In this document: positions 6,648 to 59,794 of the stretch, piece by piece
Layout of the letters: every line of letters starts with the position of its first letter
Numbering within the stretch: the stretch's first letter is position 1
Assembly (NCBI GenBank): GCA_025594325.1
Contig: JANHCV010000007.1
Span: 744,001 to 808,000 of the forward strand
Source: Blastocladiella emersonii ATCC 22665
Taxonomy: Eukaryota; Fungi; Blastocladiomycota
Reading direction: 5' to 3'
DNA: 64,000 nt
The notes under the pieces: generated by a model
Seen by the model: the letters and a program-made list of their open reading frames with translations, nothing else
What the model was told of the DNA's origin: nothing
The model's database searches: none
Made by a program: the position numbers and the translations under genes

Positions 6648-6743
6648 GCGAGGAGGAGTTTTGAACACTGGCGGTTCATTTTTCGTTTTTGACACCACGC
6701 ACATATATATCGTCACATTAGCACCGACGTCACGGTCTCTCCG

Positions 6744-7341
6744 TCATTCGAGGTCCATCGAGTGCACCGACACAAAGTCGTGGTGGCCCGCCGCGATGAC
6801 CAGCTTCAGGTAGCTCACGGGCTGCGCGACGCGGACTGGGACCGAGATGCGCGACTGGCCGGCGGGGACCTCTACGAACTCGCGCGGGAGAGTGAGGACG
6901 GGCGCGAGGAGCGCAGGGGAGGAAACAGGGGCGTACGCAGCGACGTGACGAGATCGAACGGGTCGAGCACCGCGTCGGCCGTGGCCGCCGTCGACGGCGC
7001 GGTGCCCGACGGCAGCGACGGGTCCGACAGCGAGTCGGCGGTCGCGGCGTAGATCTCTATGTCCTTGACTAGTCACCAGCGATGACGCAGGTCAGCGGAT
7101 ATCTTCCTCGCAACTCAGCAGTCAGTACACACGCACCCTTGGTCGCCAACAGTGTGATCCGGCGCGGCGTCGCGGGTGCCGCGAGCTTGAGCACGAGCTC
7201 CTGCGGGAACATGCCCGTCGACGTCCAGAAGGTGCGCGGGTTGCCGTCGACGGCCGCGTCGGGCGGGAACCGGTCATCGGTCGAGCTCGCGAACACGACC
7301 AGGGGCGAAGACGCGGTTGCAGCAGGTGATGCGGCGATCAT
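6744..7341 (-). CDS. IFT25: Intraflagellar transport protein 25 (HSPB11); 3 exons (7341-7137, 7068-6937, 6871-6744)
   Basis: N-terminal FASSTDDRFPPDAAVDGNPRTFWTSTGMFPQE and C-terminal YLKLVIAAGHHDFVSVH match IFT25. Two GT..AG introns keep the frame. Confidence 0.88.
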
Positions 7342-9955: not shown

Positions 9956-10859
9956 ATAGATCTCCTTCCTAGCGTAGCAGCAGCTTGATGAGCGTCGCCA
10001 CGGCCGAGTGTGGCAAGGACGACGCGACCCTCTGGAGGCGGAGGTCGCGCCGGCTAGGAACGACCAAGCGGTCCCTGAGGTTGAGCTCACGAATCTGCTT
10101 ACGCTAATAGTTACTCTGACCGTGCGTCTGATAGAAGCGGTCCCGCAATGCCGTCGCCGTCGTTATCAAGTCGATCCGGTTCTCTGTGAAGTTCATGCAC
10201 CAAGTCGCACCACAGCCACAAGGCGCCCGCACGGGTTGTTCAAGCGCGCGTTCCACTTGCGAAGCAGCGATCGCCCGGTGAGACCGCCCTAGTGGCCTCC
10301 ATCGGCGCCATCCTGGCCTGATCACGCCCAAGGACCCCGTCGTCGTCGTTTTCGCGACCACGAATAGGCCCCCGCCCGGTGTGCTTGTTCTTGATGGTGT
10401 TTTATGCGAGGACCTCAACTGACCCCTTTGCTTTCATGTCTTGGCCGTCGTTGACATCAAGGTCCAGATCACGGCCAAGCACTCGTCAGTTTTCGCACCT
10501 CATCCCGCGGTCCCTAGAACGCCGAGCTTGTTGTCCCAGTGCATGTACTCGGCCATCGTCAGGCCGTCGGCTCACCGTTTGGTAAGTCGTGGTTTCTCGC
10601 CCGCTTGAGGTGCTCTCGCTCACGCCCGGCAAGTCGAACCGGCGCTCCGAGGCCTTCCAGGTTTTCTTGGTCCACATCGCTCTTTGCACCAAATCGCACT
10701 TCCTCCGCTGACCGTATTTGGGCTCGTGTTCGCTCACGCGGGCGCGGCGTCGAGGCGCGTCGCGGAGCTTGACGTGTTCATGTGTGTGTAATGCATGACG
10801 TCACATCATCACGACCAGACGCGCAGGACCGCACTGTTGAGCGACTTCGTGAAATGTAC

Positions 10860-12222
10860 TCGTGAGTTTGAGCAAGGCTTGCTCGACTGAGTGCGCTTGG
10901 GGGCCTCCTCTTGTGATTCAGTTCACAGTCAAGTTGCTTCTCTTGCACCCACCCCCCCCCCCTCGCTTGCTCGCCTACCCACCCGCGCCCTTGTCGCTGA
11001 AGCGCCGGTCGCACAAGTGCTGCGACTCGGACAAGTTGCTCGTACACATTGCCGCACCGTCTTTCACCGTCCATGGCCAGCGACAGTCTTTCGGCGCTGC
11101 TGCCTGCAGCTGGCGACGCCCGGAGCTCCCTTCGCCTCCATGTCGCCGCTCTGCCCCGTCGCAAGATGCGAAGTTATCCGTCGCACCTCATTCCAAAAGC
11201 GGAGCGGGGTCAAGGCGTCGTAGCAAAGCTGTCCGACTACCAGCGGCTTCTTCGCTTCAGTCGACGTGTCACAAAGCTGCTCGATCCTAAGCCTCGCAAA
11301 CCCGCATATCCGTCTACCAAGGCACTAATACGGCAGCTACGAAACTTGCTGGCTTTTGTCCAAGAGCCAGTGCCCTTCATTTACGCCGCAACAGCCATCA
11401 TCCCAGCGTCGTCTCGATGGGGACTCTCAGGCTCGTGGGTGTACGCGGCACTTAAGAGCGTTACTGTGGACAGAACAGAAGCTAGAAACGACCCCTGCCA
11501 AGTTGAGCTCGACGGCGAAATCACGATAATGAACATGCGCGCGGCTGATTCGAGTACGTGCCCTCGACGTGTTTCGCTGTTTTGCCAAGCTCGATACACG
11601 CGTCGTATTTCCCATGTATAGAAACGAGTGTTGCAACCTCGTCGGCACACATGGTCGAACAGCCGGTCAGTCTCGCTCCCCTTGCTGCAATGCACGCACG
11701 ACCAAGCAGCACCCCGAGACGGACCAGGAATCTCTATGGAGGCTTTCATCGCACGAAGTCAACCAGCTGAACACATTCTTCGTTGAGTTCGGAATTGTTC
11801 TCACCGGAACTGCGCTCACGCTCCCGAACCGGTCGTCGCTAACAAATCTTGTCAATCGCCTCGAGCTGCTCCTTCCGTTGGTGCCACCACACCCCAAGGC
11901 TGCAGGAGATCCCATTCGACTCGTAAAATGCGCCGCTGAACCTGTTCAAGCTCAACATGGTGACCTTTTGTGTCGTCTCTTTCACAAGCCGAGTCACGGT
12001 CGATGGATTTTTGTCCAAGCAAACCACAGTGCCGCATGGACGAGCCATCAAGAAAAGATGGGCCACGAGTTTGCCAAACAAAGTATTCAAAGGTTTGCCG
12101 TGAAAACACATCAGAAATCGCTGTGGGGCCGGAGTGCCCAAGCGGCGTTTCCTCTCAACTTCCTCACGCGCGTGCGAGCCGCGGCATCAGAAATTGTATT
12201 CGATGACGTGTCCACCACCTGA
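10860..12222 (+). pseudogene. Family B copy 1 (unknown two-domain protein), apparently frameshifted
   Basis: Exons of about 11110-11553 and 11622-12222 are homologous to copies at 13.0 and 13.5-14.7 kb (KLSDYQRLLRF, LRNLLAFVQEPVP, SRWGLSGSWV, WTSHQEKMGHEFAKQ). Similarity to copy 3 switches frame near 11690-11720. 5' structure is uncertain. Confidence 0.55.
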
Positions 12223-12749
12223 AAACAACGAAGATGACTCTATGAATTTTTTTGTAAACGCACACTGGCCGCTCTTGTTCGGGAACCATCAGCTCGAGTG
12301 GGCGAACGACGCGTCGCGTCGCGTCGCGTCGCGTTTCAGGTCACGCCACATGATCAGATCGCGATCACCATCGCCTAAACGGGAACCGCGAACCTCGCAC
12401 CTGCCCTCGCATCAACCCTCGCATTAATCCAGGCGCCAGGTCTGACGCGACGATCTGTGCGAGGTCTAACGCAAGACCCCCGCCTGTCCCGACCTACGAC
12501 ATTTTGACTTTGGCGCCAGCACTCGCATCGCAACCCTCGCATCACACCTGGCTTCAGGCCTGGCTTCAGGCATCTCAAAATGGGAGGCTTTTCGGTGATG
12601 ATAGGAGATATTGTGCGGGACGCGACGGGGGCATGGGATGCGCGCACGTGTGAACGACGAATGACGTCGTGACCTCATTCACACCATAACGCCCGTCCGC
12701 ACCCCCAGGGCTCCGATGCTCATTTTCTTGCCAAATGTACTCGTTTCTT

Positions 12750-13372
12750 TGATGCGGCTTGCTTAGATCAATGCGCGCTAGTGCTTTTGGCGTGCTGCGA
12801 GCGCACTAGGGCTGCCCTCGCCCGCACCTTACTGCTCTCAACCCCGTTCGTCATTGGCAACGTCCTGATCGCATACAAGCGACATCAAGAACTCAACCAG
12901 CTACCGCAGGAACGAGGTTTAGGCCCGGTCGACCCGCAGCGCTCAGCCCACGGACCGCGAGCATCGCTCAGCAATCATGTTGCCCTAAGCTGGCGCCGCC
13001 CAGACTTCAGCCAAGCGTCATGCGGCTGCACTTCCCCGCCGTGCGATGCGCAGCAGTCCCTCGCATCTCCTCGTACCTCGGACGCAATGGTCGCCAGATG
13101 TAGTTGGAAAACAGTCCGACTACATCAGGCTGCTCAGGTCCACTCGCCAGCTCACCAAGATTCTCACGGGCGAGCCGTACGCTACCGCGAAACCAAACGG
13201 CCCAGAGATTGCCATACAACTTCGGAAGCTCCTCGCGCTCCTGCAAGAACCGGTACCTCTGGATCCCAGCGCACCGCCGCCAAGGATCCCCGCCGCATCT
13301 CGTTGGGGCTTCTCGGGCACGTGGGTCTTCGTTCCGCTGACGGCCAAAGACACCTCGAGCAACGACTGCTAG
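12750..13372 (+). pseudogene. Family B copy 2, truncated after the first domain
   Basis: AALPRRAMRSSPSHLL..KQSDYIRLLRS..QLRKLLALLQEPVP..AASRWGFSGTWVFVP, then a stop at 13370-13372. It has the same ag|ctggcg acceptor as copy 1. Confidence 0.55.
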
Positions 13373-13504
13373 CGAGGGCACAAGATCGCACGCACGCATG
13401 AGCAGAAGCGAGTCCGGCCCGATGTATTTTCTCATGAGCACCAACAGTATAAACAAGAACTTGCGCTTGAAGACAGGTCAAGACGTTGCGGCACTTGATC
13501 ACTC

Positions 13505-14728
13505 GTGCTCGGTATTGACGTGGCCAGTCTCAACGTCGAGCGAGCTCGTCGGCGAGATGTTCTCGGCGTCGGCGTGCGCGTCCTGGGACTCGGCAGCATT
13601 CGTAGCGGCGGCCGGAATGCTCGCGTCGCGCTGGCGCTGGTTGGTGTTGTCTATGATGACCAGCGGGGTGGGAATGACCTAGAGAATAGCAACCCTCCTA
13701 TGGCGCTCCGGCTTCTCGCGGGTGCCGTCCCTCGCCGCTCGATTCGAGGGAAACCTTCACACTTTGACCCATTCGTCGCCATGGGCATCGATGTGGCGGC
13801 AAAGCAGTCTGACCACCGGCGGCTCATCAAGTTCACTCGACGGCTTACATCGGCCCTTGCGGGGGCCTCCGTTCCATCTTCACCGTCATCCAGTACTCCA
13901 ACCGCGACGGAGATCCTCGGCCAGCTGTATAAGCTCCTCCCACTTGTGAGCGAGCTGGTTCCTCAAAGCCACGCCAACAGCAAGGTCCGAGCTGCATCAC
14001 GCTGGGGTCTTTCTGGATCATGGGTTTACGTACCGTTCGTTCCGCATCCCTCAGCAAGTCTCTCGATCCAGCTTAGCCAAGATTCTGAACAAGCCTCACG
14101 AGGAACAGCCAGTCATGCATCGAAGGACCATTCTGGAGCGGCTGTTGGACCAGGTACGAGCGTCTTTGTTGAAAGCACAGATATCCGAGACACAACTGAC
14201 CGTTTACCGCCTTCAACTCGACGGTTCTACTTGTTTCACTGCTGTGTCTTGTCGAAACCTGTTTTCCTCGCGATGATTTGACGGCTTTACTCGACCCGTG
14301 TAGACAGAAAACCTCCGAGCGATTCAAATCGTGTTCAAGAACTGGGCAAACTCAAGTTCCCGGTCCTGCGCCCAGTATCGAGGGACCCTGACGGCGTCTG
14401 GATCCTCTCGAACTACGAACCCCAGGAACTGCACATGTTCACCCTTGCTCTATCTGAGGCAGTAACTGGAACCGGTTTGCTGCTTCCGGACTCGACAAGC
14501 GTGACCAACCTTCTCAACCACCTCGAACTCATGCTGCCACTTGTCGAGTCGGCAGGTACCACGACGCAGCCCGTTTCAGCGTCCAATGCCGAGTCGCTGC
14601 GCCCATCACGATACTCGATTTCCAGACCACAACACGGGCAATGGGTCTTTGCGGCATCTGATCCCGAACATTGGACGTCACATCAAGCCAAGCTCGGCAT
14701 CGAGTTCGCCAAGCAGCATGCTAGTTGA
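13505..14728 (+). CDS. Family B copy 3 (unknown two-domain protein); true start unresolved
   Basis: AKQSDHRRLIKF..LYKLLPLVSELVP..AASRWGLSGSWVYVP. A GTACGA..TAG intron (about 14154-14303) joins in frame to WILSNYEPQELHMF..TNLLNHLELMLPLV..HGQWVF..WTSHQAKLGIEFAKQ. Confidence 0.55.
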
Positions 14729-15006
14729 CGCGTGTCTCCATCGCCGTTTGAAGTGTCCCATAGATTTCAGTATAATGTCACTTGTCGATTGATTCACTTC
14801 CAATGTCCTCGCGTCGAAAAACTGCCGGTGTCTCGCACGTCCGCGCGCGTGTCTCGTGTTTCAAGCCGAGCCGTGATCGCGTGAGACTCGACGCGTCGCG
14901 TTGCGCCACACCAGCACCCTGAATTTGAGGAATTTGAGGACCCCCAACCCCCGTCCACCCCCTTGACCCTCTCGGGCCACAGCAAACGACTTGATGCAAC
15001 GGCTCT

Positions 15007-23500: not shown

Positions 23501-24610
23501 GGCCAGGTCGCGCGTGCGGTACGCGCCGCTCGCGGACAGGTACGCGGCGAGGACGAGCGCGTGCTTGCGCTTGGCGAGGTTGTCTGTGGGCAGCGACGTG
23601 GATGATCGCGTTAGTGTCAAATCTCCAGGTCCGCGGTCGCGGGGCAACGCACCAGCAGTCGACGCGTCGGCGTGGAAGCGGAGCAGGTCCTGGACCAGCT
23701 TGGCGACATCGGCCGAGTTGACGCCGTCAAACACGTTGGGCGCGTCGGCGTCGAGCTCGAAGGTGAAGATGGCGCCGGCGAGGACCGTGATGGGGACGAG
23801 CGCCTCGTCCTCGTCTGCGAGGTGGCGCTGGAGGTACACGAGCACGGCCTTGTGGAGGCCGGCCTTGACGACGCTGTTCGTCGCCGTGACGGGCTCGCGG
23901 AGGACGATGCGCGCGAGAAGGGTCGCGAGCAGCGCGGTGGTGTGCGCGTCAGCAACCGCATCGAGGCGCGCGGCGAGGTCGGCGGCGAGGCCAGCGAAGG
24001 AAGCGGAGTGCACGAACACGGCCAGGTTGGCGTCTACATCGAGTTGCGGGAAGCCGCGTCAGTGCGGTGGCCGTGGCGGAGGCGGTGTGGCGCAACGCGT
24101 ACCGTTCTGGAGCAGGTGGCCGAGGTACGCCACGGCGCTGACGAGCGTCTCGGGGTGCTCGTGGTTGCCGACGATGCTGGCGACGACCGAGGCCAGGTGC
24201 TCCTCTACAACCGCGATAAGGATCATGAGGGACACGTCTCGAAACAGCGGGTGCTACGGCACCCGATCCGGGGCGCAGGCAGTCCGTACCAGCAACGGGG
24301 GCTTTGGGCGCCTTGGCGATGAGGCCGTCCTGGCCGTGCTTGGCGAGCAGCTCGTCAAAGTCTGCCAGAGGGCGCGCGAACGTCAGCTAGGGAACATTCG
24401 CAACCACACGCCAGACGCACCCCGCGTCGAGTGCGAGTCGATGCGCTTGCGGCCGAACCCGATGGCCGAGATGCGCTTGAAGAACCCGCCCTTCTTCTTC
24501 TTCTCGGCGCCCGGCGAGTGCGACCCGGCGGCGCGCTCGTGCTCGGCGAGCGAGGCGAACAGGTCCACAGCGGCGGGCGAGAGGTCGGGCGAGTTGAGGG
24601 TGACGGTCAT
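20580..24610 (-). CDS. Large multi-exon protein with ARM/HEAT-like helical N-terminal half and two C-terminal SPRY-like domains
   Basis: Exons can be joined through GTGCGT/GTACGG/GTACGC introns from the ATG at 24610. SPRY-like VAACLLDLDAGTISVAVNG...FPTVTL, and a second copy GYFETAVV...VRVGFGV. Confidence 0.65.
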
Positions 24611-46239: not shown

Positions 46240-46271
46240 GTTTCAGCCGCTCACGCGGTGGCGCAACGCGT
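46240..46271 (-). promoter_or_regulatory. Family A upstream element, instance 0 (orphan)
   Basis: + strand GTTTCAGCCGCTCACGCGGTGGCGCAACGCGT, near-identical to the elements upstream of copies 1, 3 and 4. Confidence 0.55.
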
Positions 46272-46357
46272 ATTCGGCTCACGCCGGCCGCCGACGAACT
46301 GGAAAGCTGAGAGAAACGGGAATCAGACAAATGATTCTGATTGATTGAGCGGTAACA

Positions 46358-47782
46358 TCATTTCTCGTGCTTGATGAACACGGCAGGCAGGAGTCCCGTC
46401 TGCGCGTCGCGAGGCAGAGCGAACGAAGGGCTTCGCCCTGTAGCCGTAGGTTCGTGCTCTCGGCGAAGCTTGTCGATGATCGCGCGCGATTCCATGAAGA
46501 AGTTCTCGCCGAAAAACTCACCCTTACCGAGCGAAGCCATGGCTTCGTCATACAGGGGCTGAAGCGGCGGGAGATGCTTGCGCTCGATGCGGAAGCGCGC
46601 GGCAAATCCAGTAGTCGCCTAAGTGGTGCGATGAACACGTCAGCGACCGTGCGATGAGGGAGAACCCGGGAGACTGGACGCACCAAGACGGCAATCGTGA
46701 TGACGATGAGAGGCGCGAGCTGGTGAAGCGTGACGATCTTGGGCTCGGCCCCGCCCTCCACTGCCAGCGCCGTGCGCGCGTTGAGCCGCGTGAGGTACGT
46801 CTCGAGCTCAGAAATGCTGTGCACTAGAGAGTGTGGCCGTGAGGTGATGGTCAAAACCGTATCAAAGCACAATGTACACACGATCGCGCCAGGCCATTGC
46901 TCGCTCAACGAGCGAGACCAGGAACGGGCTCAAAGCGCGCGCCCCGCTCCCATCGTCCAGCGGTGCGAACATCCAGCGCTGCATAAACGCAAGGGTCCGA
47001 ACCTCGGTAGCGGTCGCGGTTGAAGGAAGAGTTGAACAGAGCGCGGAAGCCCGCGGATTGTCAAACATTTTGGTCATGATCTGGCGCACGGACTTGCGGA
47101 ACTTGATGCCGAATTCCGCAAACAGGCTCTGGTACTAGATTGACGGGAATGGTTAGAACGAGGTCAGGTCGCGCGGCAGTGAGTTCGGCAGGCACGCACC
47201 GCCTCAAAGTCCAAACGGCTTTCACCTCCGCCAAAGAGCTCGAGAAAATCGACATAGCAGTGGTTGCGGACGATCGAGGTGTCCGTGAAGAGGCCGTAGA
47301 CAAGCACACTCAGCCGGACCTGCAGCTTGACGTCATTCGAAAGCGTCTTGAGCCGCACCCGCTTAGCCGCGTGCCTGACGCCGTTCCCACGCGAAGGTCG
47401 CAACAAGGCGGTCAGTCTAACTCCGAAGCAGGTAGACAGGCCCGTAAACGTACACGGCCACCTTCTCCTCGGCCTCCTCGTCGTCGTCGTCGTTGGCCGC
47501 ATCCTCGAACTCGCTCTGACTCGCGGCAGCGTCATCACCGCTGTGCGAGTCACCCTCGCCTTGGGCAGTCTCACGGCGACCCCTCTGATCGTCGACACCA
47601 GCTTCGCGTTTCACACGAACGGCGGATTCAGGGCGACCACGGCTCGGTCGGTCCGCTCTCGGGCGAGGACGCGCCCGTGCGGCGTCAGCGAGGGGGCGCT
47701 CCGGCCGAGTCGGTTCGGGCCGCGCCGAGCGCTCGCGGATACGCTTACTGCGTCGAGCCGTTTCAGTTGCATGAGGTTCCAT
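46358..47782 (-). CDS. Family A copy 1, unknown 5-exon protein (about 400 aa)
   Basis: MEPHATETARRSKRIRER, acidic tract, LVYGLF..HCYVDF, EVRTLAF..W..SPFL..W, VTLHQLAPLIVITIAVL, LYDEA, RDAQTGL. Confidence 0.72.
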
Positions 47783-47856
47783 GGGTTTTGCGTCCGCAAT
47801 GGCAGCGGGTTGCTGCTTTTGTCGGGGAGCAGCGACTGATGCGGCCGCCCGCGTTC

Positions 47857-47889
47857 GTTTCAGCCGGCACGGGAGGTGGCGCAACGCGT
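47857..47889 (-). promoter_or_regulatory. Family A upstream element, instance 1
   Basis: + strand GTTTCAGCCGGCACGGGAGGTGGCGCAACGCGT, about 75-105 bp upstream of the ATG at 47782. Confidence 0.6.
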
Positions 47890-47997
47890 TTGTTCCCTTC
47901 CAGCCCGCTTGCAGAAAAAGCGAGTCACTCGGGACAGGACTTCGGATCAAGATCTTTGAGAATGCGTTATTGATACAAACTGATGAGATGGACGCCA

Positions 47998-49282
47998 TCA
48001 CATGCCATGCTTGGCGAACGCTGCCATCGGGAGCCCCGACCGCGCATCGCGAAGCACGTCCGACGGCCGGTTTCGGCGCGAAACCACCGACTTGCCCCCC
48101 TTGAGCAGCTTCTGAGCGAGAGCGCGTGAGTCCTTGACAAACTGCTCGTCGAGGACGCCGTCCTGGTCCTGGAGCGACTCGATGGCCTCGTTGTACAGTC
48201 CGTGGAGCGGCGGGAGGTGCGTCGAGTCGATGCCGAGGTGCGAGACGATAGCAGGGTTTGCCTGTGGGGCACTTATGGGTGAGCGGAGCGACTACGATGG
48301 CGGAAGCGTGATCGAGTGGTACCAGAGTCGCAATCGTGACCACGATCAGCGGCGCGAGCTGGTGCAGCGTGATGGTCCTACCCTCGCCGGCCCGCGCCAT
48401 GCGCTTGTTGATCTGCTTGAGGCAGGCCTCGACCTCGACAAAGCCGTTCCCTGAGCACGGGTGCTGGGCGTCAGTGGACGGTCGCGGTCGAACACCCGTA
48501 CGAAGCGTGCACGTACCTTCGCGCCAGGTGATCGCTTTCTCGACGAGGTCGTTGAGGAACGGGTGCAAGACGGACGTGCCGGCACTCGTCCGCTCCTTGA
48601 GCATCCAGTGGCGGTTGAATTCGAGCGTCCGGACGTCGGAATCAGCGTCGACGTCGGGAAAGGTCGGTCGGACCGAAGCGCTCGCTTTGCGCTTGAGGAT
48701 GCCATTCGCCGCGGTAGTGATGCTCTGGCGGTACGACTTGAGCGCCTTCCTGTACGCCTCGAGGTACTGTGACACGAAGAGACGAGTGAGATGCGTCCAA
48801 GTGCGGTGTTCGTTCAGTCAAGCCGTCGCACCTCCTCGAATCGCATCGCCGAATCTCCCTTGGAGACCGCGTCGAGGTAGTTGGCGTAGCAGTGCTCGCG
48901 GATGACCGCGCGACTCGCGAACGGCCCGTAGACGAGGGCGCTCACGCGGACGTGGACCGGGGGCAGAGACGCAACACGCCGGCGCTTCTTTGCGCTAGCG
49001 ACGACCATGGCGTTTAGGTTCGAGCGACGCGGACGGGGGCGCGTGAACGATGCCGTACCCTTGAACGCCGCGGTCGTCCGTTTCCTCGCCATCCTCACCG
49101 CCACCGTCATCATCGTCGTCACCTTTACGCTCGTCCGCGCTCTCGTCCAGGTCCTCATCTTGCCCTCGACCAGTTCCACGAGTGCGACCGGCATCGCCCA
49201 TCCCAGATGACTCCAAACCGACCGCCGATTGCGGGCGGCGGCGCTTGATAACACCGGCCGTGGTAGTTGCATGAGGCTCCAT
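47998..49282 (-). CDS. Family A copy 2
   Basis: MEPHAT, acidic tract, LVYGPF..REHCYANY, DVRTLEFNRHW..HPFL..W, ITLHQLAPLIVVTIATL, LYNEAIESLQDQDG, RDARSGLPMAAF. Confidence 0.75.
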
Positions 49283-49503
49283 GGCGTTTATTGTCAATGT
49301 GCTGCGAGGGCGCTGAGAAGGTCGCAACGCTGGTGTGCGAAGCGAAGCAGGACTCACACAGCCCACGGTGCGCGGGCACGCGGATGTGGCGCAACGCGTC
49401 CGCGGCCCCGACTCTGCCCGTTCCGATCGTTTCGCGACTCTCAACGGCACAAAAAGGAGGCAAACTTGCGAATCGTTTACACTGCTGGAAAACGCGACAC
49501 GAA

Positions 49504-51062
49504 TCAAACATGACGGATGAACGCAGCGAGCGGGAGCCCGAGCAGCGGGTCACGCGGCACGCTGCTCGCGGGCTCAGTGACACGCGGCGGCACACGCTTG
49601 TGTGGCAGGTCGGCGAGTAGTGTGCGCGAGTCTTCGGCGAACTGCCTGCCGAGAATGCCGTCCGAGTCGTTGAGCGCGGCGAGGGCCTCGTTGTACAGCT
49701 CCTGGATCGGCGGGGCATGAGTGCAGTCGACATCGAGAGTGGACGCGATGCCCGCGCTCGCCTACGATGCGAAACAAGGTGAGTCGTGGAAGACGCCAAG
49801 TCGATGGCGGTGGGATTGAGCGAAGCGGTGCGTACCAGAACGGCGATGGTGACGACTATGAGGGGCGCGAGTTGCTGCAGCGTGACGATCTTGGGCTCAG
49901 GCTGAGTCTCTGCCTCAGCGGCCCGAGCTGCGCGCTCGTTCAGCCGCTCAAGGTAGGCTTCGATTGCGGAGAAGCTGTTCACTACAGGCGCGTACCAAGC
50001 GAAACGTAAGCGATCAACTAGCGCGCGGCGAACTCGAGAGCATGTACCATCCTTCCAGTTCATCGCCTTCTCTACAACCTTGTGCAGGAACGGGTGAATG
50101 GTGAGCGCATCGACGTCACTCGCCGGGGACTTGATGATCCACTGCTGATTGAAGGAGAGCGTCCGAATGTTGGCCGGCGAAGCAGAGATGGGAAGGGTCG
50201 GGTGAACCGAGGCGAGCGTCTCGTCCTTGAAAATTTTCACCGTGGCCTCGTTGATTCTGCGGCGAAAGTAGCCGAGAACCTCGACAAAAAACTCGCGGTA
50301 CTAGCTCGGGAAGAGAACATGTAAGCCTTGGAGCGATGAACAGGCCAGTGGAGAAGAGTCGTACCGCATCAAAGTCCAGCGCCTCGCCCTCTGCTCCAAC
50401 GATTTCGAGATAGTCGGCGTAACAGTGCGTGCGGATGATGTCGGCGTCCACGAAGGGCCCGTAAACAAGAAAACTGGCACGAAGCTGCGTCTTGACGGCC
50501 AGCGGCAGCTTCGTCAACTTCCCGGGCACGCGGCGCTTCTTCGCACTCCTAAATCAATCCCAGTGCTCAACACGTAAGGTTGTGTGTCGTTCGGCGAAAT
50601 GCTTGGAACGGAAGCGCACCTGGGTGCAACAACATCTCCCTTCCTGTCGGTACCTCCGTCGGACTCGCGATTCCCAGCAAGAACATCGCGACCGCCGCGA
50701 GCGCCCTTGCCGTCGTCGACTGCACCGCGATTCTCAGCTGTGATACGTCTCGCGCTGCCAGGCGCTCCAACAAGCACATCGGCGCTTTCGCCCTCCTCCT
50801 CCGATTCAACAACAACCACAAGAGCCGCGGTGCGACGACGACTCGGCCTTACCGTCCTAGTGCGTAGAACAAGGCTCGCCGCTCCGTCATCCAAGTCCTC
50901 TTTCATAAGGCCTGACTCGGACGCGGTGCGCTTCACACCGGGGCCAAGTCGTGTGCGCTTCGAAGCAGCGGCGATGGCGCGCGACGGCGGAACCCATCCG
51001 TCCGCGACGCGCTGTTTGATGCGTTCGCTGCGGCGGCCCGAGCCTGTTGCATGAGGTTCCAT
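49504..51062 (-). CDS. Family A copy 3
   Basis: MEPHATGSGRRSERIK, LVYGPF..RTHCYADY, NIRTLSFNQQW..HPFL..W, VTLQQLAPLIVVTIAVL, LYNEALAALNDSDG, RDPLLGLPLAAF. Confidence 0.75.
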
Positions 51063-51554
51063 GGTCTCTGCTTTCATTGCGGCGTCGTGGGTTAAAGAGA
51101 AGGAGAGCGGTGATGGACGCCTAAGCGACCGACCAGGCTGGCGGTGGCGCAGTGACATGCGTGACAGCCACTTCCCGCGTGCCGCTCGCGAACCGGCCGC
51201 AACGAGCTCGTTCTCCCCATCGAGCGGACCCCTCCATGTAGCGCCATGGAAACTTGATGCAACGGGTGGTAGGATGGTAGATCAAGCGCCATCCGCAATC
51301 AAGTCGAGCGGGTTTGTCGGTGTAACTGGCTCGCGCTTCTCTCGGCCCGCAGCTGCCGCTCCTCACGCAGCTTGAGCACAGGCCAGGTTGCGTAGCGGAG
51401 GCGCCGCACGATTCCGAACAAGTCGGATCAAGAGCGGACTGGTGAGCTTTGCTACGTTCAACCGTAGCTCTTGCATCAGATTATGGCCACCCGCTTGACA
51501 TGAAGCTGTTCCCTGGCAACGACGGGCGGCTGTGATGGAGAGAGAGGCCTGAGC

Positions 51555-51586
51555 GTTTCAGCCACTCACGAGGTGGCGCGACGCGT
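51555..51586 (-). promoter_or_regulatory. Family A upstream element, instance 3
   Basis: + strand GTTTCAGCCACTCACGAGGTGGCGCGACGCGT. Confidence 0.55.
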
Positions 51587-51688
51587 CCAGCCCGCTTCGC
51601 GAGCGGCTCCTTGCTCCAGTCTCCTCCGAACGAGTTCATGCACGACGTGGTATATTATACGACTTGATGCAGAGAAGGAAAACGCCGA

Positions 51689-53091
51689 CTACTTCTGGTG
51701 CTGGACAAACGCCGCGAGCGGCAGGCCCGAGAGCGCATCGCGGGGCACCACGGTCGGCGTGTGCGCCTTTGTGTACCCCTCGACGAGCGGGCGGCGCTCC
51801 TGGTACAGCTCGTCCACGAGGGTACGCGCGTCGGTCGCAAACTTCTCGCCGAGGATGCCGTCCGGGTCATGGAGCGCTTCGAGCGCCTCGTTGTAAAGCG
51901 CCTGGAGCGGGGGTAGCTGGTGGCTCTTGAAACCGAGGTGAAGCGCGATTCCGGCGTTTGCCTGATGGAGAGAATGGTTGGTGAGTTTTCGACGAGGCGC
52001 GGATGCGGACTACAAGGGGCAACGTACAAGCACGGCGATGGTGGCGACAATGAGCGGCGCGAGCTGGTGCAGCGTGACGGGCGTCGTGTCGCCGTTCCGG
52101 TTGGCGCGGGCCATGCGCTCGTTGAGTCGAGTGATGTAGGCCTCGATCTCGGCCAAGCTGCTGCCTATTTTATGGCACACGCGGAGTCGGAGGCAGCTAT
52201 CAGTGGGTGTTCACCGCGTCATGGGTGCGAGGACATACCGTTGCGCCAGTTCATGACTCGGCGGAAGACCGCAGCAAAGAACGGGTGGATGGTCAACGTG
52301 CTACCGCGTTTGCTGGACGTCCCCTTGATCATCCAGTGCCGGTTGAAGTTGAGGGTACGAATCGCCTCACCCGCGTCAACGGCCGGCAGCTTTGGCCAAA
52401 TCGAGGCGGTTCCCTTGGCCTTGAATAGTTTCGTGACCACACGGGCGATGAGAGACCGGAACGGCCTGCTGACCATCAAAAAATGTTTGTTGTACTAGGG
52501 CGCGGTTGATCGAGTCAGCGTGGATGGGTTATGGGGCGAGGGAAAGGCGCGTACCTCCTCAAAGTCCATGTTCGAGTCATTCTCGCCGCAGAGCCCGACG
52601 TAGTCCGCATGGCAATGTTGGCGAAGAGTCTCGAGATCCACAAACGGCCCGTGAACGAGGTAACACACGCGAGTCTGCACCTTGAGCTTCATGGGCAGCT
52701 CGGACAAATTCAGATGCCGCCTCTTCGACGACCTATTAAGACCGTAGTGTTAAATACATGAGCACTGAGGAAGCATATCAGAAAAGCCGCACCCGTCAAC
52801 CTGGGCGTGGGCGTCGTCGAGCTCGTCCTCGTCGTCCTGCTCTCCCTCGTGCTCCAACCCCTCATCGTAATCGCTCCCATCCTCGCCGTCGGCGGCAGCG
52901 TCCTGGACGACGAGCTCAGTTTTGACGCGACTGGCCGTGGAAGCCTGCTCTCGAGAGAGCCGGCCCGCTCCAGGGCGCAGCCGCGGCCGTGGGGCGGCTG
53001 CGACGGCTGGCTCCAAAGTGGCGTCATCGTCCGCCGAGCGCTCGCGGAGACGCTTGCTGCGTCGGACCGGCTCAGTTGCATGAGCTTCCAT
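51689..53091 (-). CDS. Family A copy 4
   Basis: MEAHATEPVRRSKRLRER, acidic tract, LVHGPF..RQHCHADY, AIRTLNFNRHW..HPFF..W, VTLHQLAPLIVATIAVL, LYNEALEALHDPDG, RDALSGLPLAAF. Confidence 0.75.
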
Positions 53092-53198
53092 GACTGGCAC
53101 GTTTGTAGCCGTAGAGGGATGTTTCGTCGGCTGCTGCGAGTGAGGGCGAGTGTGAGCGGCGGGCATTTCGGCCCGGAGCGCGACGGGCGATCCGCAGC

Positions 53199-53232
53199 GT
53201 TTCAGCCTGGTCACCTGAGTGGCGCAACGCGT
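53199..53232 (-). promoter_or_regulatory. Family A upstream element, instance 4
   Basis: + strand GTTTCAGCCTGGTCACCTGAGTGGCGCAACGCGT, about 110-140 bp upstream of the ATG at 53091. Confidence 0.6.
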
Positions 53233-53497
53233 CCAGCCGGGCTGAGCAGCTCCAGCTCTCCTAGCCCGAGCCGGAGCGCACGAGCTGAGGCGAAGAGAAA
53301 TCGGCTGGTTGGGGACCCTCTCTGACTGATGGTTGGCGGGCGGACTGTGGCCTGATTTCGCCACGCGGCTCGCATCTCGATGCACCGCACGCGTTGGACC
53401 GCATCGATGCCACTGAAGTCATCCTCTCGAGCCTCCATGGGACAAAACCGCAAACACATGATGCTGTAGATACTCGACTTCTCGCTCGATCCATGAA

Positions 53498-54981
53498 TCA
53501 ACTGTCATCCTCGCCCTCATCGCTGTCAGCAAGCATCGCAAGCGGAACTCCCGTGAGCGCGTCCCGCTTGACATCGCCGTCAGCAGCGTTGCCCAATGAT
53601 GCGTCAGCACCCAAGTCGTTGATCAGCTTGCGGCACTGCTCGACAAAGCGTTTTCCAAGCAGGCCCTGCTTGTTCTCAAGCTCCTGGACCAGGTTGGCGT
53701 ACAGTTGGCTGATTGGCGGAAGCGGATCGCGAGAGACGCCAAGGTGGAACCCGATCCCAAGAGTAGCCTGGATAATTGAAGCGAAGGTCAGTTACGCGTG
53801 AGCATGAGTGGGGACTGAGATAACGTACGAAGCATGCCGTCATAAGGACGATCTGCGGTGCGACGTGGTCGAGCTTGACAAGCTTTGGCGGCGAGACCGC
53901 ACGGGACGAGTTCGCGATGCGAGCGTTGAGTCGGGCGAGAGAGGCCGAGACGGCCATAAGCGAGTTACCTGCAATGGATCGGTGGATGAGGTCGAGGTCA
54001 GTCTCGACCCGGGAGCCACGAAATGGAATCACGTACCGTTACGCCAGCAGAGCGACCGTTTCGTCAAAGTGGCGAGGAACGGATGAAGGTCACGCGCGCC
54101 GACAGTGCCGTCCGTTGCGGGAGCGAGCATCCAAGCCAGGTTGAAGGCAAGGCTGCGGGTCTCGCCACTGGACGAGAGGTTCGGGAAGTGAGGAACTGGC
54201 GGGTTGGGCTCGGTTTCTGCGGTTGCTGCCGAAGCGAGCAAGTGTTTTGCTGACTCGACGGTAATTTTGCGAAGACTCGAAGTAACATTCGTGACGTAAG
54301 GAAGGTACTAAACAACATGCGTGAGTGCGCCGGAGCGCAACGAACCGCAAGTGAGAGAACAACGCACCGCTTCGAATGAGAGCAGCGGGTCGTGCCCTGC
54401 AAAGAGCTCGCAGTAGTCGACGTAAAAAAAGTCTCGGATGATCTGCTCGCTAGCAAAAAGTCCGTGTACCAAGACGCATGCGCGGATGTGGTTCGTAAAG
54501 GAGCGCGGCATGCCGGTCAAGACAGCGACGCAACGTCTCCGCTTGCTAGCCGGGGAACGTGACGTGCGTCCGCGTTTCGCAGGACTATCGGGGCGGAGGT
54601 GCGTATCAGCATGGCGCGGCGCATACGCTGGTTTCCAGATATGACATACGGCGTGAAATCGTCCTTTTCCTCATCCTCCTCCTCGTCATCGTCGCTACGC
54701 TCAACGTCCGTTCCCGCTGCGCTGGGTTCGTCCTCACATTCATCGGCTGCAGCGCCATGCCGCTGCGCGCTGTCGCCCGTTGCCGCCGTGGAACGGGATC
54801 CGCGTCGTTCGCGCTTTACCCGCAGCGGGATCTCGTTTGGCAGCTGCGAGGTTGCGCGCGCCTCGAGCGGACGATTGGGGCACCGCGCCGGTGACTCGCT
54901 AGGGGCGAGAACGGCAGCGCGCGAGCGGTCCGCGAGGCGTAGGCTACGCCGCGGTTTACATTCGTTTGCATCAAGTGTCAT
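53498..54981 (-). CDS. Family A copy 5 (most divergent intact-looking copy)
   Basis: MTLDANECKPRRSLRL, acidic tract, LVHGLF..DFFYVDY, ETRSLAFNLAW..HPFL..W, VKLDHVAPQIV, LYANL..NKQGLLG, RDALTGVPLA. Confidence 0.7.
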
Positions 54982-55335
54982 GTTGGCGTGGCAAGTCCGA
55001 GGTTGAGTATCAGGAAAAGAGCTGGCCGCGGCGGACTTGCGAGCGAGGATCGACCGCCGAGTCATCTGTTTTAGCGACGCGTCTCACACGCCACACGGCG
55101 CGCGCGTCACCGGCGCCGCATGGCGTTGGCGAAATCAATGCGCTCCTGACATGAATCCCTCGCTTCAAGTTAGGTGCGTTTGATAACACGTTCGAAAAAC
55201 GACGGTTTTGATTGCACGAGCCCAGTTTGATCACGTTGATGTCAAAAATCGTGTCTGTATTTACTTCTCTCGCACACACACCAGACACTTTGCGCCCATG
55301 CGAACCACTCGCACACAAATCAGACCTCACGTTCT

Positions 55336-56514
55336 CTACTGGGGGCTGAGGTAGAGGAGACGGTTGGGCGACCCGTTGACGTCATAGATCTTGTTGGGCG
55401 TGGCGTCGTTGAGCAGCTTGGCGACGAGCCCGTCCTTGGACAGCGACGGGTTGGCGGACCAGGTGGCGGCGGCGGCGCCGACGACCATGGGCGTGGCCAT
55501 GGAGGTCCCCGAGATGGTGTTGTACCCGCCGTTGTTCCACGCGCTGTAAATGTCCTGGCCGGGCGCGATGATGTCGACGCACTGGCCGTAGTTGGAGAAG
55601 GACGCGCGCGCGTCGTTGCTCGTCGACGCGGCCACGCACACGGCGCCCGCCGCCGACGCCGGCGACACGTTGCACGCGTCCTGCGACTCGTTGCCCGCGG
55701 CTACGCCAACAAAAACGCCCGATGCGGCGAGCGCCGAGACGGCGTCGTTGGTGGCCTGCGAAAAACCGCCGCCGAGGCTCAGGTTGGCGACCGACCGGCG
55801 GCCCGTCTGGCGCGCGTGCTGCGCGACCCACGACACGCCGTTGATGATCTCCGAGTTGGACCCGAACCCGTCATCTCCGAGCACCTTCACGGCGATGACG
55901 TTGGCCCGCTTGGCCACGCCCGTGGTGGCGCCCGCGACGGTGCCGGCGACGTGGGTGCCGTGGCCCTGGCCGTCGCGCTGCGAGCAGCCCGAGCACACGT
56001 AGCCCCACGACGCGCGGCCGCCAAACTCGCGGTGGTTCACCGTGACGCCCGTGTCGATGATGTACGCGTTGACGCCCGACCCGGCGGCGTCCGGGTAGAC
56101 GAACGGCGCGCCGCGCAGGTTGAGGTCGCGCTGCGAGATGCGCGCCAGGCCCCACGACGGCGGCGACTGCTGGACGCCCGAGATGGCGACCCACGTGTCC
56201 TGCTCGACGGCGGCGACCTTGGGGTGCTCCTTGAGGCGCTTGGCGAGGCCCGCCGAGAAGGTGCCCGCGTAGCCCTTGAAGGCCGCCGACACGGCAAACT
56301 CGTGGTCGACCTTGGACTGCACGGCGACGCCCTCGCGCGCGTTCTCGGTGGCGACCTCGGCCTTGAGCGCCTTGGTGAAGGCGGCCTGGTCGACGTCGGG
56401 CTTGAGGCGCACAATGAACTGGTTCGGGATCACGTCGCCCGCCTTCTTGCCGCCGGGCGCGGCCTGCACGCCGACGACGAGGGCCAGAGCAGCGAGGAGG
56501 GTGGCGATCTTCAT
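55336..56514 (-). CDS. Secreted subtilisin-like serine protease (S8A, proteinase K type) with signal peptide and I9 propeptide; intronless
   Basis: Signal MKIATLLAALALVVGVQA. Catalytic motifs YIIDTG, GHGTHVAG, AAGN and SGTSMATP. WGLARI. Confidence 0.96.
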   Translation of the reverse strand: MKIATLLAALALVVGVQAAPGGKKAGDVIPNQFIVRLKPDVDQAAFTKALKAEVATENAREGVAVQSKVDHEFAVSAAFKGYAGTFSAGLAKRLKEHPKVAAVEQDTWVAISGVQQSPPSWGLARISQRDLNLRGAPFVYPDAAGSGVNAYIIDTGVTVNHREFGGRASWGYVCSGCSQRDGQGHGTHVAGTVAGATTGVAKRANVIAVKVLGDDGFGSNSEIINGVSWVAQHARQTGRRSVANLSLGGGFSQATNDAVSALAASGVFVGVAAGNESQDACNVSPASAAGAVCVAASTSNDARASFSNYGQCVDIIAPGQDIYSAWNNGGYNTISGTSMATPMVVGAAAATWSANPSLSKDGLVAKLLNDATPNKIYDVNGSPNRLLYLSPQ

Positions 56515-57803
56515 GGTGTTGGTGGTGGTGACGACTTCTAGGGTCTAGCGGGTCAGGAGCGCAGCTGCTGATGCTGGTTCAGTTGGGAGGAAGCGGGGGA
56601 GGCGGCCGCTCTTTATACTCGCGCTGCCGTCGCCGCTGTGTACGCAGGGCATCCCACTCCCAACGCCGGCACGGCACGTTGCCGACTGGTTCCCTGCGAC
56701 TCCATCGATGCAGGAGCAAGGAGTCGCGTGCATAACGGGGCGACGCGTCGTCCTTGTTCCCGTGATCAAAGTCATGATCGCGTCGCGTGAGTGGACCGCG
56801 CGCCGAAACACGCCCCCGCGCTCGAATCCCCGCGCGCACCAACCACTCACGTCGCTCTTTCGCTCGGCATCGAGCGCGGAATCGTGTCGCGTGGTCCAAT
56901 TTAGGATCCGCGCGAGGTGCGCGCGAGTTCGCGGGACGGTTGTTCTTGTGACGCGGGACGCGCCGCACCGCGTGTGCGCGCTGCAACTGCCCTCTCTCAT
57001 CGTCGCCCCCTGACTCGACCCGCCGCTGTGCGCGCGAGTCTGCGGCCATGCGTGATGGGAAGGCCGAGGACACGCGGTGACGGTTGATCGGTGGAATGAT
57101 CTGCGCGCGCGCGGGCCGAGAGCCTGGCCCCAGCGCCGCACGCGTGTGTCCGCTCCTCCCCTCTCCTGTACGCAGCGGCATCCCGTGGCCGTCACCGACG
57201 ACGATGAACTATCGTCGCAACCCTGGCCTGACGTTGGGGATAGATGATCCGAGGATGCACACATGAGCGAGACTCGTCGTCGTCCTATAGATGATCCGTG
57301 GGAACGGCTCCGTTCATCTCCATCTCCATCGACATCACAGCTTGGGCTCGGGCATCGCGCCGGCGGGCGTCGCGACGACAAGCGGCGGCTCTTCGGCCGG
57401 CGCACCACCCGTCTTCCCGCCGAGCCATCCCGCGTCCTCGGGCCGGCCAAGGTACCCGGCCCCCATCTTGGCGAGCGCCGCATCGAGGAGGCGGCGGACG
57501 CGTGGCGAGAGGCCCGCGCGCGCATAGTACCGCATCACGCCGTCCTTGTCGCGGCGGAGCCGGTGCCGCGTCGCGAGCGAATGGCAGGCGAGATGGCGGG
57601 CGAGATGCCGGACCAGTGAAACGATTGGCGGTAGCACCCCGTGAGTGGCGCAATGCGTCCTTGTTCCACGTATAGTTCACGTTGGGCGACGAGAAGGAAC
57701 GACTCTACCTCACTCACCAAGTGTTTTTCGAACACTGAAGAATGGGGCATGCAGAAACGAGCATCAGAACGACATGTTATGCATACAAACGTCCAGGCCG
57801 GGA

Positions 57804-59248
57804 TCACTTCTTATCCAGAGGAATCGCCGCGAGCGGGAGGCCCGAACACGGATCGCAGTTGGCATCGTCCATGTTGGCGATCGCCAACTGACGCCCGCAG
57901 CTCATCCTGGTGGCAATTGCGCGCGCGTCCGCAATAAACTGCGCACCGAATACTTGATTGTCGCGAGTGGCAAGCGTCTCAAGAGCCTCGATGTAGAGGT
58001 TCGCGACTGGCGGAAGCGGTGCACGGCTGAGACCGAGGTGCCATGCGATTCCCTGGTTTGCCTAGCGAACATGAACATGCAGCAGTGGTTGACAATCGTC
58101 AATCGCGTTGCAAAGTAGGAGATCGGCGAGCACGTACGATTGAGGCCAGCGCAAGGACAATCATCGGCGCGACTTGCTGATGCGTGATCACCTTGGGTTC
58201 GGCGTCAACGCTGGCCCGAGCCATCCGCTCGTTGAGTCAATGGAGGCACGACTCGACCTCGACAAACCCGTTGGCTAACGGACAACGACGCGAAAACTTA
58301 GGGGACGACCCGCTGCGCGTCTCGGCGCTCGACTTGTAACCCGAAATGTTTGGGGCCGAGAGGGTAGCACCACGCCTCCCTGCCGCCGACAAGGAGGCGA
58401 GGCGGTACTTGGCGGCTTTGAGCGTCGTTTTGCGAAGGCTGAGCTCGGCGTTGGCGACCTAGAGACAGTACTATAATGACCGCACGCGCAATGCACGTCA
58501 GCACGAGCGGAGACGGTACCCGGGCCCACGCGCAAACAGGCCCCGTGACGGATCTTGTCAAAAGGAATGAGCGGACCATCGGCGGCGAAAAGGGCGGAGT
58601 AGTCGGCGTAGAAAAGTCGCGGATGACCTGCTTGCTCGCAAACGGCCCGTGAACAAGCAGGCAGGCGCGGATGTGGTAGGTGAAGGCGACCGGCATGTCA
58701 AGGAGGATGGCCGTCTTGCGCTTCTGCTGGCCCTCTGGACCGCTCACCAGTGGGCGGTTAGTTTTGCTGCGCAGCTTCTTCTTCTTCGGGCTGGCGTCGG
58801 TGTTAGCGGCAAGGGCTCCGAATCAGCAATAAGATGGGCACAGCGTACCGTGTGATTCCGTCGTCCTCGTCATCCTCGTCGTTGACTTCATTGGCATCAT
58901 CGTCATCCTCCTCGCTGTCGTCATCATCGACGTTCTCTTTGTCCTCAAAGCTGCCCGTGTCGCTGTCGGCCTCGCTGCTCTCGCTCCCGTTGTGGCCGTG
59001 GCGCGTGCCACGGGTGGCCGATGGAGCGGTACGGGCCGCGAGCGGCTTACGCTTCACACCCGGCGCCAGCTTGGGCGGCGGCAGGGGCGGCAGCGGCAGA
59101 GGTGGCCCCGGAGAGTCCCGAGCGCGCTCCTCGAGGACGCCGCGAGGCAGCCGGGCCCGCGCCTCGTTGGGAGGCCGCGCGGCCGAGTTGGCGGCGGTGG
59201 CGAGGCGGCCACTGCGGCGCTGGTCGGGCCCGTTGCATGAGCTTCCAT
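57804..59248 (-). pseudogene. Family A copy 6, pseudogene
   Basis: MEAHAT is out of frame with the following RRSGR/acidic segment. There is a 1-nt deletion at DF(F)YADY, in-frame TAG and TGA stops, and loss of the FNxxW..HPF..W block. Exon 5 (LYIEAL..DPCSGLPLAA) is still recognisable. Confidence 0.75.
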
Positions 59249-59794
59249 GGTGATGCTACGGGGTTGCTCACGTAGGGCACGGCAAGCTGAGGCCAAGAAG
59301 ATTGCGCAGCAAGGCGAGGGATGCCGAGTCACCTGTTTTCGCGTCGCGTCTCGCAGCAACGCGCGTTGGGCGAACAGCTCCCTCGCGCCTCCGCTCGCGC
59401 CATCACCGATCCTGTCAGCTTGCGCTTCCCAAGTCCTCGAGCGGCGATCGCCATGGGCAGGCGTCCTCGTAGCGGACAGTGACCGCCATGAGCGACGCGT
59501 TCGCGGTGCGCCACCAAGTCCCTGCCCCTGATCCTGCAGCGGGCCTTGACGGCGAAAGTCTTGACCATCGCTGACGGGCAGATGGAGGGACGCCGGTGGC
59601 AGCCCGCTCTCGTGCAGGGCTGGAGCAACGCGAGCGCCAACGAGGCCGAGAGCACTCGAAAGCGAGGAGGACGGATGGCTGACCAACGCGCTGCGGGTCC
59701 CACGCTCACGGGCCCGCGCGTTCTTCACTCGCCCTTCCACTCTCCCCGTCCCCGCCCTCGCCGTGTTTCCTTCACGCTGCATGCAACACTCACA

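Follow-up and report, generated by a model that had tools for sequence, protein, structure and literature searches.

A tandem array of a species-restricted five-exon gene family with a DUF6532-like predicted fold in Blastocladiella emersonii

Introduction

DUF6532 (PF20149) is a fungal domain family expanded mainly in the Agaricomycetes. The searchable literature contains just one list entry for it, where it stands among the domains co-enriched in certain Ganoderma species, next to the transposon domains KDZ, Plavaka and CxC2; this is co-listing, not linkage (PMC8955403). A paper on transposons that was also consulted makes no mention of DUF6532. Here we describe a tandem array of genes in Blastocladiella emersonii ATCC 22665 whose products have a predicted fold resembling that of DUF6532 proteins. 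The array lies in a 64-kb stretch of contig JANHCV010000007.1 (positions 744,001 to 808,000), hereafter the window. We are highly confident that it is an array of a five-exon family which, in public data, is restricted to this species, and whose predicted fold comes nearest to DUF6532. What its proteins do is a matter on which we can offer a tentative reading, and several others are weighed against it below.

The array and its gene models

How many copies does the window contain? They were located by a six-frame motif scan, by frame-by-frame listings of coding segments, and by scanning the six-frame translation with a hidden Markov model (HMM) of the family. There are exactly six units in the 64 kb (table 1) and none elsewhere in the window, tblastn being in agreement with the HMM. 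All six are on the minus strand and one is dead, as the initial annotation of this DNA had proposed. A seventh copy was sought at 44.9–46.3 kb with tblastn and the family HMM and was not found; since neither gave any signal there, a decayed copy at that place is rejected.

Splice models were obtained by enumerating the GT–AG introns that join coding segments without stops. Copies c1–c5 each have five exons and four introns of 58–79 nt, at conserved positions and in phases 2, 0, 1, 0. The initial annotation spoke of three core introns at the same positions; the positions are indeed conserved, but the introns number four. Similarly, its spacing of 1.5–1.9 kb holds for c1–c5, which are 1.5–2.0 kb apart, but not for c6, which is 4.3 kb from c5, beyond a subtilase gene. 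The units carry, in order, the motifs ME(P/A)HAT, LV(Y/H)G(P/L)F, HCYADY, RTLxFNxxWM, HPF(L/F), xLxRLNxR, VTLHQLAPLIV, LYNEA and SGLPLAAF, while amino-acid identity among c1–c5 is 30–46%. The M(E)xHAT start ascribed to every copy is found generally, but not in c5; this begins MTLDAN...RRSLRL, a diverged form of ME(P/A)HAT...RRSxR(I/L).

The sixth copy has several lesions. Its MEAHAT, at 59248, is in a frame different from that of the acidic tract, and a frameshift occurs within exon 2 near 58616. HMM positions 60–155, the exon 3 region with the FNxxW and HPF motifs, are missing, and exon 4 has an in-frame stop at about 58237–58239. A remnant of exon 5 (58061–57822) is still recognisable. We conclude that c6 is dead.

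How do these models compare with those deposited at NCBI? Residues 76–341 of c2 are identical to residues 6–271 of the deposited protein P0001, and residues 140–427 of c3 are identical to P0005 (H9P43_006207), intron 1 included. Residues 214–380 of c4 differ from P0012 (H9P43_006208) in a single position, where intron 3 is spliced out. The match of c1 to H9P43_006206 is partial, since that model wrongly joins c2 to parts of c1. Both H9P43_006207 and H9P43_006208 lack the N-terminal tails. At another locus H9P43_006338, of 1725 aa, fuses a RabGAP-TBC protein to a family copy (of subfamily A2, see below); we reject this combined architecture as real and treat it as a fusion of gene models. The NCBI gene models at the family loci are unreliable.

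Table 1. Positions of the array, its genes and associated elements. Numbers are positions in the window, except for the duplicated block, which is given in coordinates of the two loci.
Feature	Position	Strand	Exons	Description	Basis
Tandem array	46358-59248	minus		six copies; c1-c5 intact, c6 pseudogene	motif scan, six-frame listings, family HMM
c1	46358..47782	minus	47782-47454, 47374-47200, 47134-46882, 46823-46684, 46618-46358	A1, intact, 385 aa; ATG 47782	splice model, HMM matches
c2	47998..49282	minus	49282-49059, 48994-48832, 48766-48517, 48450-48323, 48261-47998	A1, intact, 342 aa; ATG 49282	splice model
c3	49504..51062	minus	51062-50620, 50548-50365, 50300-50048, 49981-49836, 49761-49504	A1, intact, 427 aa; ATG 51062	splice model
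c4	51689..53091	minus	53091-52793, 52732-52555, 52494-52239, 52164-52028, 51961-51689	A1, intact, 380 aa; ATG 53091	splice model
c5	53498..54981	minus	54981-54650, 54584-54368, 54307-54037, 53968-53829, 53767-53498	A2, intact, 409 aa; ATG 54981	splice model, HMM matches, tree
c6	57807..59248	minus		pseudogene, A2-like; ATG 59248	segment listing, family HMM
Intergenic motif (G/A/T)ACGCGTTGCGCCAC / CGCGTTGCGCCAC	46258-46272, 47876-47890, 49386-49400, 51573-51587, 53219-53233, 57645-57659	minus			
Motif CGCGTTGCGCCAC, further window sites	14895-14909 (+), 24087-24101 (-)				
Upstream element AAAACAGRTGACTCGGC	55056-55072, 59323-59339	minus		common to c5 and c6 (A2), about 90 nt before the ATG	
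Subtilase gene	55336..56514	minus		intronless, Peptidase_S8 with Inhibitor_I9 propeptide, 392 aa	Pfam, GC3
Duplicated block	L001 2680-15541 vs L002 2464-15357			about 781-802 kb on both contigs; flanks do not align	

Range and turnover of the family

Where else does the family occur? The stop-free open reading frame over exons 3–4 of c2, used as a query, recovered four proteins, each a ‘hypothetical protein’ of B. emersonii ATCC 22665. A family profile was then compared exhaustively with 1.84 billion representative proteins. There were 24 matches, all at or below 1e-10 and with nothing weaker, and all are models of the same strain, on three contigs (the source was looked up for 20 of them, though not for P0025, and four had been named in the earlier search). 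To judge from public data, the family thus appears to be confined to B. emersonii.

In the DNA of four further loci, scanned with the HMM, there are arrays of five, eight and four copies; the array of five recurs in two loci that are nearly identical. The exons of these arrays meet at HMM positions 58/59, 143–145 and 188, as they do in the window. The family amounts to roughly 35 copies, many of them truncated, with at least 30 annotated models or fragments. From the agreement of all arrays in intron position and phase we conclude that the family spread as DNA, by tandem and segmental duplication, and not by retroposition.

One array is largely contained in a 12.9-kb block that is 99.4% identical between JANHCV010000008.1 and JANHCV010000014.1 (loci L001 and L002, table 1). 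Two annotated family genes inside it show no differences between the contigs, and dN/dS is consequently not computable from the block. Either the segment was duplicated very recently or the assembly is redundant here. At the right edge of the block about eight units of ~143 bp are repeated in tandem (L001 15557–16682; 128-bp matches, 87–89% identity), and the differences between the two block copies are mostly in and just before these repeats. The low-GC island of the contig-8 array also contains two open reading frames that match leucine-rich repeats (LRR), at L001 4585–5211 (−) and 6717–7289 (+).

Same-strand adjoining paralogues, shared introns, graded divergence and pseudogenes are all found here, the features of a tandem birth-and-death family. 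The family turns over by birth and death, with pseudogenisation. The initial annotation had surmised as much from the window; the pseudogene is now joined by the truncated copies of the other arrays and by the 12.9-kb block.

Predicted fold and its relation to DUF6532

The intact protein has an N-terminal tail, predicted to be disordered, and after it a compact domain of about 270 aa that is predicted to be all-helical. Is this domain a known one? No Pfam match was obtained by hmmscan with the exon pieces, with nine full-length members or with all 32 rows of alignment A4, and with these same queries the DUF6532 HMM was not matched even at E ≤ 10. A sequence profile search of the PDB returned nothing below E 0.3. 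With relatives found only in the B. emersonii genome and no match in Pfam, the family is as unrecognised as it first seemed.

For the 276-aa member P0003, AlphaFold2 with a 32-row alignment of paralogues only gave an all-alpha model of pLDDT 90 and pTM 0.84. The 32 rows were needed; with only five sequences the pLDDT was 48. Foldseek searches with the model gave noise only against the PDB (TM below 0.25), and TM below 0.22 with probability below 0.25 against both the Swiss-Prot models and the BFVD viral models. A viral origin is rejected on the lack of any BFVD match together with the conserved spliceosomal introns. In the ESM Atlas, a shape search reached TM 0.36 at most, over partial alignments and to unrelated families only, and a feature search, over all clusters and over named clusters only, had an uninformative best score of 0.80. 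A confident match to a well-characterised family, the result that the initial annotation had counted against its own reading, did not appear in Pfam, the PDB or the Foldseek libraries.

The sole positive structural lead came from the AlphaFold-DB clusters, where DUF6532 proteins make up 10 of the 30 best Foldseek matches. They have probabilities of 0.5–1.0 and TM 0.25–0.47 over about 225–245 aligned residues, with identities of 9–15%, rmsd 7.6–17.5 Å and E 0.04–0.4. These probabilities stand far above the noise in the four other libraries. Several unnamed proteins in the list score likewise. The remaining matches have probabilities of 0.10–0.18 and TM 0.13–0.17, with the exception of one DUF533 row at 0.54 and TM 0.22. 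Since the scores fall into two classes in this way, DUF6532 appears to be the real nearest structural neighbour of the predicted model, although TM values below 0.5 and E values in that range do not prove homology. The likeness to DUF6532 that had been suggested from the motif order thus finds support in the predicted fold but not in the sequence.

The two families are alike in being all-helical, similar in size, multi-copy in fungi and functionally uncharacterised. They differ in that none of the 32 members matches the Pfam HMM, and the Blastocladiomycota are very distant from the Agaricomycetes. The MExHAT/RRSxR tail and the motifs LVYGPF, HCYADY, FNxxWM, HPF, RLNxR, TLHQLAP and PPLxxLY are peculiar to the Blastocladiella family.

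The N-terminal part of the domain is a three-helix sub-domain. Comparison of it with the homeodomain, Myb/SANT, Zeste and capicua C1 gave scores lower than those that the tool itself classes as noise where folds are helical. Pfam, run on the 32-row alignment, found no sequence signature of any of these three-helix DNA-binding families. Unlike three-helix DNA-binding domains, moreover, the sub-domain packs against the rest of the 270-aa helical domain.

Do these genes owe their presence to transposons? They might be domesticated, or still transposon-linked, accessory genes, DUF6532-fold proteins being passengers of large DNA transposons. The nearest fold neighbours, the Ganoderma co-listing (PMC8955403), the position of the arrays in lower-GC islands and the near-identical block on two contigs all lend themselves to this explanation. 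However, neither the gene lists and Pfam results of four loci nor the open reading frames of one island showed a transposase, reverse transcriptase, integrase or other transposable-element domain, and no terminal repeats were found beside the arrays, where no systematic search for them was made. The neighbours of the arrays (midasin, metacaspase, RhoGEF, NEDD4_Bsd2, BCDHK kinase) are ordinary host genes, and the non-family content of the four loci comprises only host genes and LRR fragments. The family has kept its four spliceosomal introns, and the copies lie head to tail as ordinary tandem duplicates do. A signature like that of repeat-induced point mutation was not found: TpA/ApT is about 0.5 and CpG observed/expected 1.2–1.3, as in host DNA, and such mutation is rejected as the source of the low GC. 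The Ganoderma entry, for its part, does not show linkage. The transposon role entertained in the initial annotation is not upheld by these findings, and we regard a transposon connection as decidedly unlikely.

Conservation and selection

In an alignment of about 30 members, conservation reaches 80% or more in 45 columns. Most of these hold L, R, P, Y, G, W or F, and eight are arginines; no conserved D/E/H/C/S catalytic set was found among them, in keeping with the absence of an enzyme motif noted at the outset. The H and C of HCYADY, the H of HPF and the H of LHQ vary among members, which makes a metal or catalytic site in the domain unlikely.

By the Nei–Gojobori method, dN/dS is 0.35–0.73 in the core (dN 0.45–0.75, dS 0.8–2.1) and 0.32–0.83 in the N-terminal tail. 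A core ratio near 1, which the initial annotation would have taken as telling against it, was not obtained; with dS near saturation and biased by GC3, however, values below 1 are not decisive. Taken with the intact frames and splice sites, the conserved columns, and the ability of paralogue covariation alone to fold the domain, they point to real but moderate constraint.

Codon usage sets the family apart from host genes, as had been claimed: GC3 is 0.67–0.80 in family genes vs 0.96–0.97 in the neighbouring subtilase and GST genes. The window as a whole is ~70% GC, with two lower-GC islands (about 55–64%), one at roughly 10–15 kb and the other at 45–55 kb plus 58–59 kb.

Could the apparent genes be relics in decaying, non-functional DNA, or artefacts of annotation? 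One copy is dead, several in other arrays are truncated, GC3 is below that of host genes, and the NCBI models are fragmented or fused. Against this, five copies have remained open across five exons, with canonical GT–AG borders and conserved phases, despite 54–70% amino-acid divergence. The conserved columns, the pLDDT-90 model obtained from covariation of paralogues alone and dN/dS below 1 also speak against decay, and we would very nearly set it aside.

Subfamilies A1 and A2

In a tree of 33 copies, five intact members split from all others with SH-like support of 0.99. These are c5, the C-terminus of H9P43_006338 and three copies of locus L003, together constituting A2; all remaining copies, c1–c4 included, are A1. 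Within the tree c5 groups with members of the P0010, P0011 and P0021 type. In A2 proteins IRACxLVHGxF and F(Y/F)xDYC replace LVYGPF and HCYADY, and the C-terminus is acidic. The pseudogene c6 has these A2 features, yet its fragmentary sequence joins the A2 clade weakly (support 0.38). We conclude that A1 and A2 are two old subfamilies, and assign c6 to A2 by its motifs.

Members of A2 stand beside A1 in three of the five placed arrays, namely that of the window, that of L003 and the 006335–006340 cluster. Might the two then be interacting partners in a genetic conflict (poison–antidote, drive or allorecognition), their divergence being an arms race? Besides this adjacency, the fast divergence seen in dN, the pseudogenes, the limitation to one lineage and, in the predicted model, a central hydrophobic helix ringed by amphipathic helices could be so understood. 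But the arrays of L001 and L004 contain A1 only, pairwise dN/dS is below 1, and neither pore-forming nor other toxin folds were matched. Genetic conflict is in our judgement quite improbable. A more sweeping version would unite the Blastocladiella family and the Agaricomycete DUF6532 in a single fungal superfamily, ancient and fast-evolving, whose members are selfish or conflict genes with two components. The A1 and A2 genes would then recur side by side because their products form an interacting pair, for example poison and antidote or heterodimeric chromatin binders from a mobile element. This we record as a highly speculative idea, in which we place very little credence.

Proposed role

What, then, might these proteins do? 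We tentatively favour, at rather less than even chances, non-enzymatic binding or adaptor proteins targeted to the nucleus. The N-terminal tails are 94–174 aa long and begin, in c1, c3, c4, c5 and members of other arrays, with M(E/T)xxA(T/N)...RRSxR(I/L). They are basic–acidic–basic, an acidic tract being followed by a K(K/R)x(K/R) patch immediately before the domain; patches of the KKRRR type occur in c1–c5. Basic patches and acidic/basic tails are hallmarks of classical nuclear localisation signals (NLS) and of nuclear acidic/basic proteins. Nuclear or chromatin placement is our best guess, and it is from these tails and their NLS-like patches only that we derive it.

On this proposal the NLS-like patches of the tail would direct the protein to the nucleus, where the DUF6532-like helical domain would recognise nucleic acid, chromatin or partner proteins. 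As candidate contacts we name the three-helix sub-domain at the N-terminal end, the third helix of that sub-domain, which is rich in lysine and arginine, and the eight conserved arginines. Duplication and divergence may then yield paralogues of differing specificity.

Several observations weigh against nuclear binding proteins. The three-helix matches score within what the tool treats as noise among helical folds. The DUF6532 matches themselves have TM below 0.5 and E 0.04–0.4, and DUF6532 is a domain to which no function has been assigned. Weak constraint could also account for the low GC3 and the high dN. Finally, the hydrophobic helix of 23 residues, LAPLIVVTIATLANVGIVSHLG, may point to a protein that associates with membranes rather than to a helix buried in the core.

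The life cycle of B. emersonii is tightly staged. A look-up listed no RNA run that contains the DNA of the array; the genome paper mentions ESTs only, of which 23,370 are published, from zoospores, germlings, vegetative cells and sporulation. The family might consist of stage-specific helical proteins of the cytoplasm or an organelle, structural or regulatory, employed in the zoospore or sporulation programme, and its charged tails might be generic disordered linkers. GC3 values of 0.67–0.80 fit genes that are not constitutively highly expressed, and the intergenic motif that the copies have in common (see below) suggests co-regulation. Yet the K(K/R)x(K/R) patches and RRSxR(I/L) are kept across paralogues that are otherwise 30–46% identical, which argues that the tails are functional and NLS-like, and neither a signal peptide nor an N-terminal targeting sequence was seen. 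We consider a stage-specific cytoplasmic or organellar role unlikely, and retain nucleus-targeted binding or adaptor proteins as the working proposal.

Intergenic and upstream elements

The motif CGCGTTGCGCCAC is counted seven times on the minus strand of the array, six of the sites being given in table 1. It occurs about 85–165 nt past the stop of c1, c2, c3, c4 and c6, and 283 nt past that of c5. Of 22 family copies at four loci, 15 have it 85–283 nt beyond their last exon. It also follows the terminal copies c1 and c6, where no family gene is downstream, and in L004 and L001 it precedes first or divergent copies. Given these last two placements, it resembles a simple promoter less than an intergenic boundary element (a putative terminator, promoter or general factor site). 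Non-family genes have it beside them too. The upstream element AAAACAGRTGACTCGGC, common to c5 and c6, was not found in L001, L003 or L004 with up to two mismatches allowed.

Neighbouring sequences in the window

The subtilase gene between c5 and c6 is not a family member; its GC3 of 0.96 is host-like, unlike that of the surrounding array.

The island at about 10000–15000 (plus strand; GC 0.55–0.60) contains repeated open reading frames of another, unrelated family, family B, with the recurring peptides KQSDYxRLLxFxRRxTKxL, ...ASSRWGLSGSWVY... and HWTSHQxKxGxEFAKQ. Neither tblastn nor the HMM of the family described above (family A) matched this island. Like family A, family B consists of head-to-tail, spliced, fast-diverging genes in a lower-GC island, with no relatives elsewhere, but the proteins are unrelated and neither method connects them.

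Significance

The present work gives a clean description of a large orphan family in a model zoosporic fungus. The family takes up tens of kilobases, and its annotation has so far consisted only of ‘hypothetical proteins’ that are fused or truncated. The predicted fold offers a first structural bridge from an orphan of an early-diverging fungus to DUF6532, a large and unexplained domain family of mushroom fungi, so that whatever is learned of one family would bear on the other. For RNA-seq, tagging and knock-down in B. emersonii, handles are provided by the corrected gene models, by the division into two subfamilies and by the intergenic motif.

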